64,000 bases of DNA from Lepidodermella squamata (GCA_047495785.1 JBLDXI010000001.1:2542001-2606000); one strand, 5' to 3'. Shown: positions 55,679 to 61,460, numbered from the stretch's first letter. The notes: generated by a model not told the origin, from the letters alone. Translations and numbers: made by a program.

Positions 55679-56906
55679 TTAGTTTGTAGTCATAGTTAGT
55701 CGAATCCAGTCCAGGAAAACGCTTACACGTGTGTAAACACCTAGTATCAAAAAACTCATTAAAACAAATTAATAATTTGCGTTCGATCCAACCTGGTAAG
55801 CCGACTCCGCAAACCGTTCCCCAACTGACAATTCCAACCTGAACGAAAACTGGGCTGTCAGGCGATTGTCGCATGATCAAAGGCCCGCCACTGTCGCCCT
55901 GACATGCGTCCTTAACCCCAGCGTTTGCACACAGCATTGTATCGTCAACATCGATGAAAACAAAGCGCTTCTCACAATCTGGGTTCGTCATAGTGTAAAG
56001 TTCAACTTTCTGAAGGGTATTAGCTGAGAAACCACCTTGAATAGCAATAGAATAAGAATTAGCAAAAATTTGGCGAATTTATCCATGGGGAAGGTTTTTA
56101 CCATCGATCATGTAGCCCCATCCAGCGGCAACTGTAGCATTCCGATCGAGGCTTCCGATGTCTGATTGTGGTAGGCAAATGTCTCGAATATTGCTGTCAA
56201 AAGTCAGCGGAGAAGCCAGTTTTATCAATGCAACATCATTTGACATTGTCAATGGATCGAAGTCTTTGTGAGGAAGAATTGTCGCCACTTTGACGTAGAC
56301 CTCAGTTGTATCAGCATTTAAAAGGCGATGTTCCCCGGCTACGACACGTATTCGGCTGAGAGTCAGTGAGGAAGTGACGTCGAGTCCCTGAAAGCAGTGA
56401 GCAGCTGTGAGGATGTAGTACTGATTCAGGATTGAACCGCCGCAAATGTGCTCGCTGTCCCTTTGGATGCTAACAAGCCACTAGGAGTAAAGAGTAAAGA
56501 ATATGACTTAATGTTGTGAAACTTCATCAAAGCACCGGAAACTCGTTAGGAAAAGCATCTTCCCCATTGGCGATTCTGTTCATTTGTTGCTCTGTCTTTC
56601 CAGCTAGACTTCCATACTTTGAAACACCACAGCTGTCTGTAGAAGTCTAAATTTGATACATACTCGTATTTTCAGCTTTCATCTCTTACAATCAAGAGGA
56701 TTTATGGTTGTCACGTCTGGTGGAAGGGTCACAATCGGCACGCAGCATTTCTTGCTACTTAGAGTTCCACAGCGAAGATTTGGATCTTCGTAGTAATCAT
56801 CTTTGCAACTGAAATCGCAGTAAGACCCAGGTTTATCCCCGCAGTTCCAGAAATCTCCGCGAGTCTTATTCACGAGTAGAAACAGTAACAATACGGTGCA
56901 AATCAT
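55679..56906 (-). CDS. S1A serine protease zymogen SP1 with N-terminal 6-Cys domain
   Basis: Signal; C-x7-C-x3-C-x11-C-x7-CC; R|IANG activation site; [20 protein letters not shown]. Confidence 0.9.
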
Positions 56907-57028
56907 TTTTTAAAAGGTGCGTGTCCGTCCGATGTTAACTTGTTGAGTTTTTATTTGTTGGGCATATCTCAAAGTATGCATAAATTATATTTATCTAAAT
57001 TAGAGTCAATTTCAGTTCTGTTCCGATA

Positions 57029-58260
57029 TCAATTTGTTGCCATAGTCGTTTTCATCCAGGTCGTAAACGCGCTTACACGGGTATACACGCCTACAACGAA
57101 GGTTCAATAAGTTCGAAATCCCGATTTAATTAAGAAAAGATGCCTACCGGGATATCCTTGGGCGCAACCATAGCCCCAACTCACAAGGCCGACCTGAATA
57201 AAAACGGGGCTGTTGAGGGATTGTCGCATTATTAATGGACCCCCGCTGTCTCCGTTGCATGCGTCCTTAGTATCAGCCTGGGCACAGAGCTCGTTCTTAC
57301 TAACGCCTTCTCCGACCTCTGAGTACTCATCGTTGCATTGCGTGTTTGTGATTGTAATTAGTTGTGTTTTCTGAAGCGTTGAAGGAGAAGATCCATCTAT
57401 ATGATTCTTTGTAAATAAATATTATCAGAAATCTAAGAAGAGCAACCTTGTTGGGTGAGTCCCCATCCGGCAAGAATAGTGATGTTACGATCAAGATTGC
57501 CTATGCTCGAATCCGCTAAGCATATCTCGCGAATATTGCTATTAAACCTGAGAGAAACTGAAACTTTGACCAGGGCAATATCATTCGCAAGTGTGATGGT
57601 GTTGAATTTATCGTGCATTACAATGCTAGCCACCCTCGAGTAGACTTCAGAGGAATCAGCGCTGTACAGCCGATGTTCGCCTGATACAACTCGAATTTTC
57701 GAAAGAGTTGTCTTAGAGGTGACATCAACGTCTGTGAAGCAGTGGGCTGCAGTCAAAATCCAGTTATTGTTAATTATAGATCCGCCGCAAAAATGTTCTC
57801 CATCCATCTGTAAACTGACGATCCACTGAAAAAAGAGATGATTAAGGAGAGCATGATTACAGGCTTCAGAGCAAACAAACCGGAAATTCGTTCGGGTAAG
57901 TGTCTTCGCCATCTGTAATATAGTTCGTCGTCTTCTTTATCAATTTCCCAGCCTCTGATCCATATTTTGAAACGCCGCAGTCATCTGATGTCATTGCTCA
58001 GCTTTTTCAATTAATATTTTAAAAAGCTTACAATTCAGAGGATTGACAGTAGTCATGGAAGCCGGCACCGTGACAACAGGAACGCAGCATTTCTTACTAG
58101 AGATTCTTCCGCAGGTGTAAGCTGATTCTTCATAGTAGCCGCTTTTGCATTTATAATCGCAATATGCTCCCGGTCTCACGAAGCAATCCGAATTTTGGCA
58201 TATCGCGTGATCGAATGCAAGGATCAGAGCAAGTATTAAGGAATAAACCGTGTATGCCAT
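57029..58260 (-). CDS. S1A serine protease zymogen SP2 with N-terminal 6-Cys domain
   Basis: Same architecture; Y|ITDG at the activation site; TAAHC, NDIAL, DACNGDSGGP. Confidence 0.9.
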
Positions 58261-58552
58261 CTCTCCTAAGTAGCTCTAATCGGGTGGAATTAATTCGGTG
58301 CAAAATCCCGTTTGCGACTCTTGATTTCTTATCGCTATACGTTATCTCTTTTAGACACAGAATAGTAACACACGCCATTTTCAAGTCTGGATTAGCCCCA
58401 CCCGGGCAACCTTCGAACTGCAGAGTCAATAAGCAATTGGGGGAAATCGTGACAAAGATATGGAGCTTTCCAAGAACATACTCTGCGTCATTGGTGTCTT
58501 TTTGTTTATTTTAGCTTCAGATTAGAGAGAACGGAAGACGACCATGAAGAAA

Positions 58553-59734
58553 TTAATTAGTTGCCATGGTCTGCTGGATCCATTTGTAGTAGGAACTGAC
58601 ACGCGTATGACCACCTGATGAGAGCCAATTAAACCTTTCACAATTCATTAAAAACGGTAACTTACTAGGGGTTCCATAGCTGTCGACACAGCGCCATACG
58701 CTGATGATGCCGACTTGGGTGAAGGTTGCGACCCCATCAACTGTCTTCCGAATCATGACAGGTCCGCCTTTATCACCGGCACACACATCTCTCGATCCCG
58801 GATTGGTGCAGAATGCCGTGGCTTTGAAATGTTCATATCCGTAGGCCCTGTCACATTCAGCCTTCGACATTGTCACAAGTCGAACTTTTTGAAGTGTGTT
58901 GGCATAAATGCTGGCTGGAAATAAATCAGAGGGTGATTCGAGAGGGTGATTTTCTTAAGAAATCTTACCAGTAGATCGTTGACCCCATCCAATAGCTATG
59001 GTTGAGTTCTTCGGCAAACTTCCAATAGTTTCATCAGCCAGGCAGACTTCTCTAATATTGCTGTCGAACTTTAAAGGTTGAGCTAGCTTGATCAGCGCAA
59101 TGTCGTCATGCGTGTAGATTTCATCCAGCTTGTATTGTGGATGTTTTATGATTTTTGTTACCTTCGCGTAAACTTCAGTTGCGTCAACATTCAGCATTTT
59201 GTGCTCACCAGCAACCACTCGGGTTTTTTCAATTGTGTATGAGTTGTTTACAACCATATCGCGGTAGCATGATGCAGCGGTTAGCACCCATTGTCGATTA
59301 ATGATTGTTCCGCCGCAAAGGTGAGAGCTTTCGAACTGGATGCTCACCATCCATGGAAACTCATTCGGATAAGTGTCTTCGCCGTCGTTAATATACAAAA
59401 TCGGACTGTTTCCTATCTTTCCAGCCTCAGAGCCGTATTTTGACACGCCACAAGTATCTTAATTAAGAAGAGAACATTTAGTAGAAACGACTCAATCCCG
59501 TAGCTTACATTGGAGAGGATTAAGCGTTGTCATGTCGCCTGGCAGTTTCAGGTCTGGTGCACAGCATTTCTTACTGGTGAGAAGCCCGCATCTCAGATAA
59601 GGGTCCACGGAATAGCCTGCTTTGCAGTTGTAGTCGCAATAGCTTCCGGGCTTTTTGTCACAATCAGCAAATGATGCTTCGGAACACCCGAGCGTGATTC
59701 CGATCAAAACTAGGATGCTGATTTCTTTAGCCAT
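58553..59734 (-). CDS. Non-catalytic serine protease homologue SP3 with N-terminal 6-Cys domain
   Basis: Intact frame, but TAASC (His>Ser) and DVCAGDKGGP (Ser>Lys); Y|INDG at the activation site. Confidence 0.88.
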
Positions 59735-60183
59735 TTCTGGTACAAGCCTTTGGAATATATATGGGTACCGAGGAAGCAAGTGGGCCTAATTTAAATAGGT
59801 TCTTATCGACAGTCGTGGCGCCATAATTCCAATTGTATTTTGCGATATGGACATCTCCTTTAGTTTGTTTAGTGTCCGCCATAAACAGGCAATATTTTGA
59901 CCTAATAGATAAGTTTTTTCTTTCGCAACTTTTCTGTCTTGAGGGCTTGAGGGCAAGGATCATTAAAGACTCTTTCAATGCAAATATTTCTGAGCCATGG
60001 CAGATTTCGAATGTTTCAACTTTAGAATTGTAATTAGAGGAGAAACCATACGGTCAAGTTAAGTCGATCTTCGGAATAAAAACGTGGTATATAAGCTGTT
60101 GCTACGCTTTACTAGATAATTCGCTTTTGTCAATTTAGGATTATTAGTTAAATTGTCATTGTTCCGGGCGAATTGACTGGGAA

Positions 60184-61460
60184 TTAGTTTGTGGTCATGA
60201 CTTGTTGAATCCAGTTGTAGAAAGAACTCACACGAGCGTAAATTCCTGATAATTAATTCGAATTTTAATAAATCATTTGCTGGGGACCTATCGCAATAGT
60301 GCTTACCTGGATATCCAGCAGCGCAGCCTTCGCCCCAGCTGACGATGCCAACCTGGACAAATACCTGTCCTCCGACATCACGACGCATGATTAGAGGACC
60401 GCCGCTGTCACCCTGGCAGGCATCTCTCGCATTTCCACTCGCGCATATCTGGGAGGCCTGAACTTGATAATTCTTCTTCTTGTATTTTTCGCTGCACTCG
60501 ATGTTCGAAATCGTAGTAAGGGAGACCTTTTGTAGGGTGTTTGGATTGGTCCCACCTGATAGAAACATTTCACTTTTCACTTAAGAAGAATCGTCATTTT
60601 CTTAAATTACTACCGTCTTTAGTATGACCCCATCCTGCAACTACTGTCCAGTTACGGTCTAAATTTGCTATGCTAGGCTCAGCTAGGCAAATCTCTCGAA
60701 CATTACTGTTGAACTCGAGCGGTTCAGCAAGTTTTATGAGAGCAATGTCGTTTTGCTTCCTGGTTTGGTCAAAACCATTGAAGAAAACCTTTGCAACTTT
60801 GGCATAGACTTCAGTTGTGTCAGCATTTAGCAAACGGTGCTCGCCAACAACAGCTCTGAGCTTCGCCAGAGTTTTATCCGAATTAGCGTTAAGACCGATG
60901 AAGCAGTGAGCGGCTGTTAGGACCCATGACCTCGCTATGATCGAGGCGCCGCACAGGTGTTTGCTGTCAAGCTGAAGACTAACGAGCCACTGATGAAAAC
61001 AGCATAGGTAGATATTATTACTGGGAAACCATGAAATTAGTACACTCATACCGGGAATTCATTCGGATAAGCATCTTCGCCGTTCACGATTCGACTGTTG
61101 GGGCTAAGAGTTGTTTTGCCAGCCTCGGAACCGTATTTAGATACGCCGCAAATATCTGAAATGCACAACAGTGAGACTTTGGTGAATCATTTACGAAATT
61201 GATTTTGTACTTAGAGGTGGGACGATGGTCGTCACACCGTTAGGGAGAGCAACGCTAGGGACGCAGCATTTTTTGCTGGTAAGAAGACCGCACTTCAACG
61301 TCGGGTCTTCGAAGTGGTTATCTTTGCAATTGTAATCACAATAGGTGCCGGGCTTGGTCGAGCAATCAGAGAACAGATCGGCCGAACAGCAGCTAGCAAT
61401 TGCCAAAAGCGAAAAGCCTACTCTAAATGCAATCATGTCCGTTAAATCCTCTTTTACCAT
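60184..61460 (-). CDS. S1A serine protease zymogen SP4 with N-terminal 6-Cys domain
   Basis: R|[24 protein letters not shown]. Confidence 0.9.

Follow-up and report, generated by a model that had tools for sequence, protein, structure and literature searches.

Cascades of clip-domain serine proteases drive immunity and development in arthropods and are regarded as an arthropod speciality. The knot formed by the cysteines of the clip has long been likened to beta-defensins by the way these residues are arranged. Clip domains obey published spacing rules: the distance from C2 to C3 is constant at 5 residues, C3 and C4 are separated by 8-17 or 22-26 residues, and the domain spans 37-55 residues (PMC4676143, citing Jiang and Kanost). 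Beta-defensins follow the spacing C-x4-6-C-x3-4-C-x7-12-C-x5-7-CC, with x13-14 in the third gap of big defensins (PMC6805989) and x4-7 in the first gap of avian defensins (PMC9138766), and the cysteines of clip domains are reported to be arranged like those of beta-defensins (PMC11335235). The present analysis deals with a cluster of four genes from Lepidodermella squamata, a member of the Gastrotricha, for which one genome has been published (PMC11660948). Each gene encodes an S1A-type serine protease domain preceded by a six-cysteine knot. The cluster is located in a stretch of 64,000 nucleotides (GCA_047495785.1, JBLDXI010000001.1:2542001-2606000), which is referred to as the window.

With slightly more confidence than doubt, the genes are read here as a lineage-restricted family of secreted two-chain S1A zymogens accompanied by a dead homologue, in which the light chain would adopt a beta-defensin fold and which would work in the manner of clip proteases, membership in the clip family not being demonstrable. 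Three points are new: a knot that fits the spacing and predicted fold of defensins over the clip rules, a host outside the arthropods, and the apparent assembly of the gene on a lineage-specific zymogen. The idea of a protease that carries a defensin-like knot is not new in itself, because the likeness between clip and beta-defensin cysteines has already been published (PMC11335235). The preliminary description of the locus had suggested that this may be an undescribed family of defensin-protease fusions or a minimal clip analogue. A literature search of incomplete coverage gave no paper in which, clip proteins apart, a serine protease is fused to a defensin-like domain. The family is better described as a variant of the clip concept than as a new category. 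The same search yielded nothing pertinent on clip domains outside arthropods or on 'trans-defensin' in connection with clip, and no report on gastrotrich immunity.

Gene organisation and conservation of the knot

Genes A to D are arranged head to tail on the minus strand at window position 55679-61436. This strand was read and translated, and splice sites were curated by homology using GT..AG borders, open reading frames and similarity among the paralogues as criteria; a metagenomic orthologue (F), in which the protease part is intronless, was used as an extra guide. Two automatic heuristics for splice sites yielded spurious introns and were dropped in favour of this manual choice. Searches of the spliced models against Pfam and the databases were done exon by exon. 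All introns of genes A to D are 47-66 nt long and display GT..AG borders, and the intron phases 1, 0, 1, 1 are kept across the four genes and a fifth paralogue (E). Gene B lacks intron 2, the one located after 'PNEFP'.

Exon 1 of each gene encodes a hydrophobic leader, the six-cysteine knot and a Pro/Thr linker, which has a constant length of 17 residues and contains prolines and an invariant TT. Exon 2 opens with x-C-G-V-S-K-Y-G, and exons 3 to 5 form the S1A domain, for which the Pfam profile Trypsin (PF00089) matched in exons 3 and 4 with E-values between 1e-10 and 1e-33. Translation bore out the domain order given for all four genes in the preliminary description, namely a signal peptide and an invariant C-x7-C-x3-C-x11-C-x7-CC module on the first exon, followed by a P/T linker, a CGVSKYG-type motif and an S1A domain.

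The knot spans 34 residues, and its pattern is invariant in six of six sequences (A to E and F). Synonymous divergence (dS) is saturated in all pairs of paralogues, with values above 1.3 or undefined. Nonsynonymous divergence (dN) amounts to 0.20-0.46 in the knot, 0.33-0.61 in the catalytic exons and about 1-2 in the signal peptides. These values therefore point to old duplicates under purifying selection, and they indicate that the knot is constrained at least as much as the catalytic exons. Since the pattern stayed invariant in six sequences despite saturated synonymous sites and freely diverging signal peptides, it is not attributed to chance. The coordinates of the features are collected in Table 1.

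Table 1. Knot-bearing genes, their main features and their activation sites. Positions are those of the window; the arrow stands between P1 and the following Ile.
Feature	Position	Strand	Description
Gene A	60184..61436	-	5 exons: 61436-61211, 61155-61052, 60989-60611, 60555-60307, 60245-60184
Gene B	58553..59734	-	4 exons: 59734-59509, 59457-58969, 58914-58666, 58614-58553
Gene C	57029..58260	-	5 exons: 58260-58032, 57984-57881, 57825-57447, 57396-57148, 57090-57029
Gene D	55679..56906	-	5 exons: 56906-56690, 56636-56536, 56480-56102, 56035-55793, 55740-55679
Gene A, six-Cys knot	61263..61364	-	C1..C6, 34 residues; predicted beta-defensin fold
Gene B, six-Cys knot	59561..59662	-	
Gene C, six-Cys knot	58084..58185	-	
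Gene D, six-Cys knot	56742..56843	-	
Gene A, exon 2	61052..61155	-	Propeptide, single linker Cys (CGVSKYG), activation site
Gene B, exon 2 counterpart	59354-59457	-	Fused to exon 3
Gene C, exon 2 counterpart	57881-57984	-	
Gene D, exon 2 counterpart	56536-56636	-	
Gene A, activation site			P1 Arg, SR↓IVNG
Gene B, activation-type site			P1 Tyr, LY↓INDG
Gene C, activation site			P1 Tyr (aromatic), NY↓ITDG
Gene D, activation site			P1 Arg, NR↓IANG
Gene E, activation site			P1 Arg, NR↓IVGG
F (metagenomic orthologue), activation site			P1 Lys, DK↓IVEG

The stop codon of gene C and the ATG of gene D are separated by only 122 nt (window 56907-57028, minus strand), an operon-like spacing. The sequence AATAAA is present in this interval at 56950-56955 on the minus strand, 74 nt past the stop of gene C and 44 nt ahead of the ATG of gene D.

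The knot compared with clip domains and beta-defensins

The knot fails the clip rules at two points, as C2 and C3 are separated by 3 residues instead of 5 and the span of 34 residues falls short of 37-55. The departure from the five-residue spacing had been noted in the preliminary description, and the five residues named there agree with the published rule (PMC4676143). With gaps of 7/3/11/7, three of the four lie inside the beta-defensin range, while the first is one residue over and fits the avian range only; the proposed closeness to beta-defensin spacing is borne out to that extent. Further features which the knot has in common with beta-defensins and with big defensins in their C-terminal domain (trans-defensin or defensin-like fold, SCOP g.9.1.1) are the six cysteines, the C5C6 doublet, a Gly three residues before C2 and a Gly right after C4. 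Unlike beta-defensins, the knot is not a free peptide, as it is encoded on the same exon as the signal peptide and joined by the linker to a protease. A knot scan of the genome assembly (121.2 Mb, 151 contigs) revealed no stand-alone copy, the knot being confined to the five protease genes A to E.

When the first exons of genes A to D were scanned with Pfam at E <= 10, no family was reported, HMMER filters dropping matches above about 0.1. Neither CLIP (PF12032) nor CLIP_1 (PF18322) nor Sushi (PF00084) matched the knot. The same tool detected CLIP_1 with an E-value of 3e-5 in P0103, a genuine clip-domain serine protease homologue (cSPH) from a beetle. No match to CLIP or CLIP_1 was obtained in the whole genome in six frames at E <= 1, a search for which the controls were uninformative; in an arthropod such a result would be unusual. 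COX1 was missing from the assembly, and rotifer and nematode spliced-leader sequences had no match in it.

The fold of the 40-residue core of the knot was predicted by AlphaFold2 from the six-sequence alignment, and a predicted local distance difference test (pLDDT) score of 85 was reached in three of five models. Comparison of the model with the PDB by Foldseek gave hBD-2 (1fd3) as top match (probability 0.94, TM 0.60, 34% identity, E-value 0.12), followed by Ueq 12-1, hBD-1, hBD-4, avian and crocodile defensins, alpha-defensins and the oyster big defensin. The matches are almost exclusively structures with a beta-defensin fold, and the predicted fold is in keeping with the small triple-stranded antiparallel sheet of solved defensins. 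The cysteines would then be expected to pair as in that fold, C1-C5, C2-C4 and C3-C6. No clip chain was present among the structure matches, although PPAF-II (2b9l) is contained in the searched copy of the PDB, and no CCP module was found among them either. The knot is thus predicted to have a beta-defensin (trans-defensin) fold and not that of a canonical clip.

Several points weigh against this interpretation. The family is tiny, and the fold is a prediction from an alignment of six sequences. The other two AlphaFold models were of low quality (pLDDT 62 and 52), and a first run in which the linker was included gave a pLDDT of 57 and only noise in Foldseek and VIA, before it was replaced by the trimmed run. 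AlphaFold may merely map the six-cysteine spacing with its terminal CC onto the defensins of its training set, which would be circular. The hidden Markov models (HMMs) Defensin_beta, Defensin_beta_2 and Defensin_big did not match the knot, and no defensin was retrieved from the PDB sequences with the profile or with single sequences, only motif noise from SUN4 and CCP. The net charge of the knots ranges from -1 to +3, with isoelectric points of 4.9-8.6; they are near-neutral, unlike typical antimicrobial defensins. As regards the reading of the family as a whole, tandem trypsin arrays are also typical of digestive enzymes.

By sequence match, the knot is neither a clip nor a defensin, since none of the clip, beta-defensin and big-defensin profiles recognised it. 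The spacing and the predicted fold therefore lend partial support to the non-clip, defensin-like N-terminal domain of the preliminary description: the absence of a clip profile match and the model speak for it, the missing beta-defensin profile match and the weak charge do not.

It appears unlikely that the knot is a true clip, very divergent and shortened, and that the genes are orthologous in origin to the arthropod clip proteases, which would extend that family to Spiralia. The two systems do have much in common. Arthropod clip-domain serine proteases (cSPs) and cSPHs are likewise secreted zymogens with an N-terminal knot that ends in adjacent cysteines and holds three disulfides, as would also be the case here. 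They contain a one-cysteine linker for pairing with Cys122 of the S1A domain, a disulfide expected in the present proteins too, and are cleaved before Ile16. Active and dead members occur together in tandem clusters, and the P1 residue varies between members. The gaps C1-C2 (7) and C3-C4 (11) lie inside the clip group-1 ranges (PMC4676143), and the cysteine arrangement of clips is reported to be the same as that of beta-defensins (PMC11335235), so that both readings may coexist. A clip origin is however opposed by the C2-C3 distance and the span, by the lack of CLIP and CLIP_1 matches on the knot and, at E <= 1 and with uninformative controls, in this non-arthropod genome, and by a predicted fold which retrieves beta-defensins and not the clip of PPAF-II. 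In addition, a Pfam and regular-expression scan of the 120 closest relatives of the protease domain detected neither PF12032 nor a six-cysteine knot ending in CC; P0103 alone has a clip, of the CLIP_1 type and with different spacing. The nearest paralogues in the same genome are also devoid of a knot.

Relatives of the knot and of the protease domain

The fifth paralogue, E, lies on the same contig at a distance of about 1.05 Mb (L002:494-1725, minus strand). Genes A to E form a discrete clade, with 52-64% identity in exon 3, while the next proteases of the genome reach at most 42%. An exhaustive search with a profile of knot and linker against 1.84 billion representative proteins revealed one true relative, an open reading frame (ORF) of 84 residues. 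It corresponds to the first exon of orthologue F on an ENA metagenome contig (L006:644-1790, plus strand), where the same layout was found: the knot, a phase-1 intron at the equivalent place, the CGVSKYG exon and the protease. Scanning JGI metagenome contigs with the knot alignment gave 168 pattern matches, none of which was confirmed, and no usable knot match was obtained in the ESM Atlas. From these searches the family appears to be lineage-restricted, with five genes in this genome and one metagenomic orthologue.

The seven other profile matches were rejected as repeat proteins recognised via short motifs, sushi and DUF4215 being among those scanned. In the 15-sushi protein P0003 and the DUF4215-repeat protein P0002, the motif G-x-Y-C-x3-C-x2-G-Y is summed across repeats. 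Such matches, together with weak PDB sequence matches to CCP modules of CR1 and pappalysin-1, could indicate that the knot is related neither to clip nor to defensin, being for instance a sushi/CCP-like or cysteine-rich repeat fragment, and that the AlphaFold model is misleading. This explanation is considered highly improbable. The scores are sums of many weak repeats and cover about 20 residues; a sushi domain extends over about 60 residues, has 4 cysteines (paired 1-3 and 2-4) and does not end in CC. Neither the Pfam Sushi profile nor the structure searches connected the knot with a CCP module.

As a side observation, P0002 is a metagenome protein of 901 amino acids with 13 tandem repeats of about 53 residues, each containing six cysteines and weakly matching DUF4215, and with a C-terminal PKD domain.

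The protease domain has generic trypsins and serine protease 27-like proteins as nearest outside relatives, with identities of no more than 45%. Within the genome, the nearest paralogues lack the knot and share a CG-x-x-KY propeptide, frequently with an aromatic P1 residue. Because these module-less paralogues share that propeptide, the knot exon seems to have been added to a local type of zymogen.

Many single-exon, knot-less S1A zymogen genes with CG-x-x-KY were observed elsewhere in the genome (L012-L018; G000:C15 at about 2.20-2.81 Mb and C3 at about 2.09 Mb). In several of them the P1 residue ahead of IVGG is Trp, Phe or Tyr, suggesting that zymogens of this animal are commonly activated in a chymotrypsin-like manner.

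With regard to origin, it is quite possible, though with odds a little below even, that the Gastrotricha independently built a 'clip-type' system by gain of a beta-defensin-fold exon in a local chymotrypsinogen-like zymogen, a convergence with arthropod clip proteases that would include the dead homologue, or that the family is a minimal survivor of an ancestral knot common to clips and defensins. The locus is a test case for two questions: whether the design of a knot tethered to a protease arose more than once, and whether the knots of clips and defensins go back to a common origin. If either an independent build or an ancestral minimal form is true, experiments outside arthropods could address how clip cascades and trans-defensin domains arose. 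For a gastrotrich, the family would moreover be one of the first candidate humoral effector systems.

Catalytic residues, activation sites and possible mode of action

Genes A, C, D and E retain the complete catalytic triad His57/Asp102/Ser195. In gene B, His57 is replaced by Ser (LTAASC for TAAHC) and Ser195 by Lys (GDKGGP for GDSGGP), while all 8 non-knot cysteines and an activation-type site are retained. Because every cysteine and this site are kept, gene B encodes a catalytically dead serine-protease homologue, and is neither a protease zymogen nor a pseudogene. With a dN of 0.20-0.38, the knot of B is no less constrained than those of the other genes, and the catalytic exons of B evolve only modestly faster. 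The 'four zymogens' of the preliminary description consequently stand for A, C and D, and B has to be removed from that count. The dead members of arthropods usually carry a Ser to Gly exchange, which differs from the double replacement in B.

Asp189 is present in all members, within the motif x-D-x-C-x-G-D-S/K-G-G-P. The non-knot cysteines are distributed as 1 + 3 + 4, an even number. This set fits the pairs C42-C58, C168-C182 and C191-C220, plus a putative disulfide between the linker/propeptide cysteine and Cys122 in the ICLA/ICLP motif. A comparable tether, Cys1-Cys122, is known from chymotrypsinogen-type and mosaic S1A zymogens, which also possess a propeptide cysteine upstream of the activation site; unlike these, genes A to E add the predicted defensin-fold knot and the fixed 17-residue linker ahead of the propeptide.

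Position 1 of the Pfam Trypsin profile aligns to the Ile directly following P1 at the sites listed in Table 1. As A, D and E combine Asp189, which is trypsin-like, with Arg at P1, mutual cleavage and activation could occur. A hierarchy can be envisaged from these residues, in which A, D and E would cross-activate each other and C would require a chymotrypsin-like activator.

The following mode of action is proposed. After removal of the signal peptide, the knot would be followed by the fixed 17-residue linker and by the propeptide, the cysteine of which (in CGVSKYG) would be paired with Cys122. Cleavage at R/K↓I-x-x-G in A, D, E and F, or at Y↓I-x-D-G in B and C, would free the Ile16 N-terminus and switch the enzyme on. 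The knot would remain tethered by the disulfide as a binding, targeting or regulatory module, and B would act only as a non-catalytic partner.

In paralogue E and orthologue F, a dibasic (E/V)KR↓Q motif is present between the signal peptide and the knot, next to the signal peptide cleavage; genes A to D are without it. The motif may be a furin/kexin-type trimming site that gives an N-terminal Gln.

An extracellular proteolytic cascade is the most likely setting for this system, and a role in defence is a plausible conjecture. The reading as a defence cascade draws on the dead, cofactor-like member, the mixed P1 residues and the conservation of the knot. Given the weak charge of the knot, direct membrane killing as by cationic defensins is unlikely, and the light chain, if tethered, would more readily serve in binding, targeting or regulation, a role also proposed for clip domains.

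The genes could alternatively code for ordinary secreted trypsin-like enzymes, for instance digestive or related to moulting or eggs, with the knot as a stabilising or inhibitory pro-segment and with no part in a cascade or in defence. This is judged quite unlikely, despite a tandem array as is frequent in digestive trypsins, a generic protease domain whose best outside matches remain at or below 45% identity, the bacterivorous habit of the gastrotrich and knots which are not strongly cationic. It accounts poorly for a dead homologue that keeps an intact cysteine framework under purifying selection, for Arg and Tyr both occurring at P1 inside one cluster, and for a knot and linker length kept tighter than much of the catalytic domain; moreover, the many module-less trypsins of the genome already occupy the niche of simple enzymes.

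Some other genes of the window were recorded. The convergent neighbour of gene D (54681-55596, plus strand) is a cysteine-rich ORF without a Pfam match, which continues after a short intron with a mucin-like region rich in Thr and Ser and with a hydrophobic tail at the C-terminus; its product is possibly a membrane- or glycosylphosphatidylinositol-anchored surface protein. Three intron-free ORFs of 724-805 amino acids with ANF_receptor domains are located at 3156-5564 (plus), 11188-13605 (plus) and 19807-21981 (minus), one of them also bearing 7tm_3, and look like a local cluster of class-C G-protein-coupled-receptor-like genes. Finally, the ORFs at 13731-15020 (minus) and 15897-17279 (plus) form a divergently oriented pair with weak matches to DUF6492.

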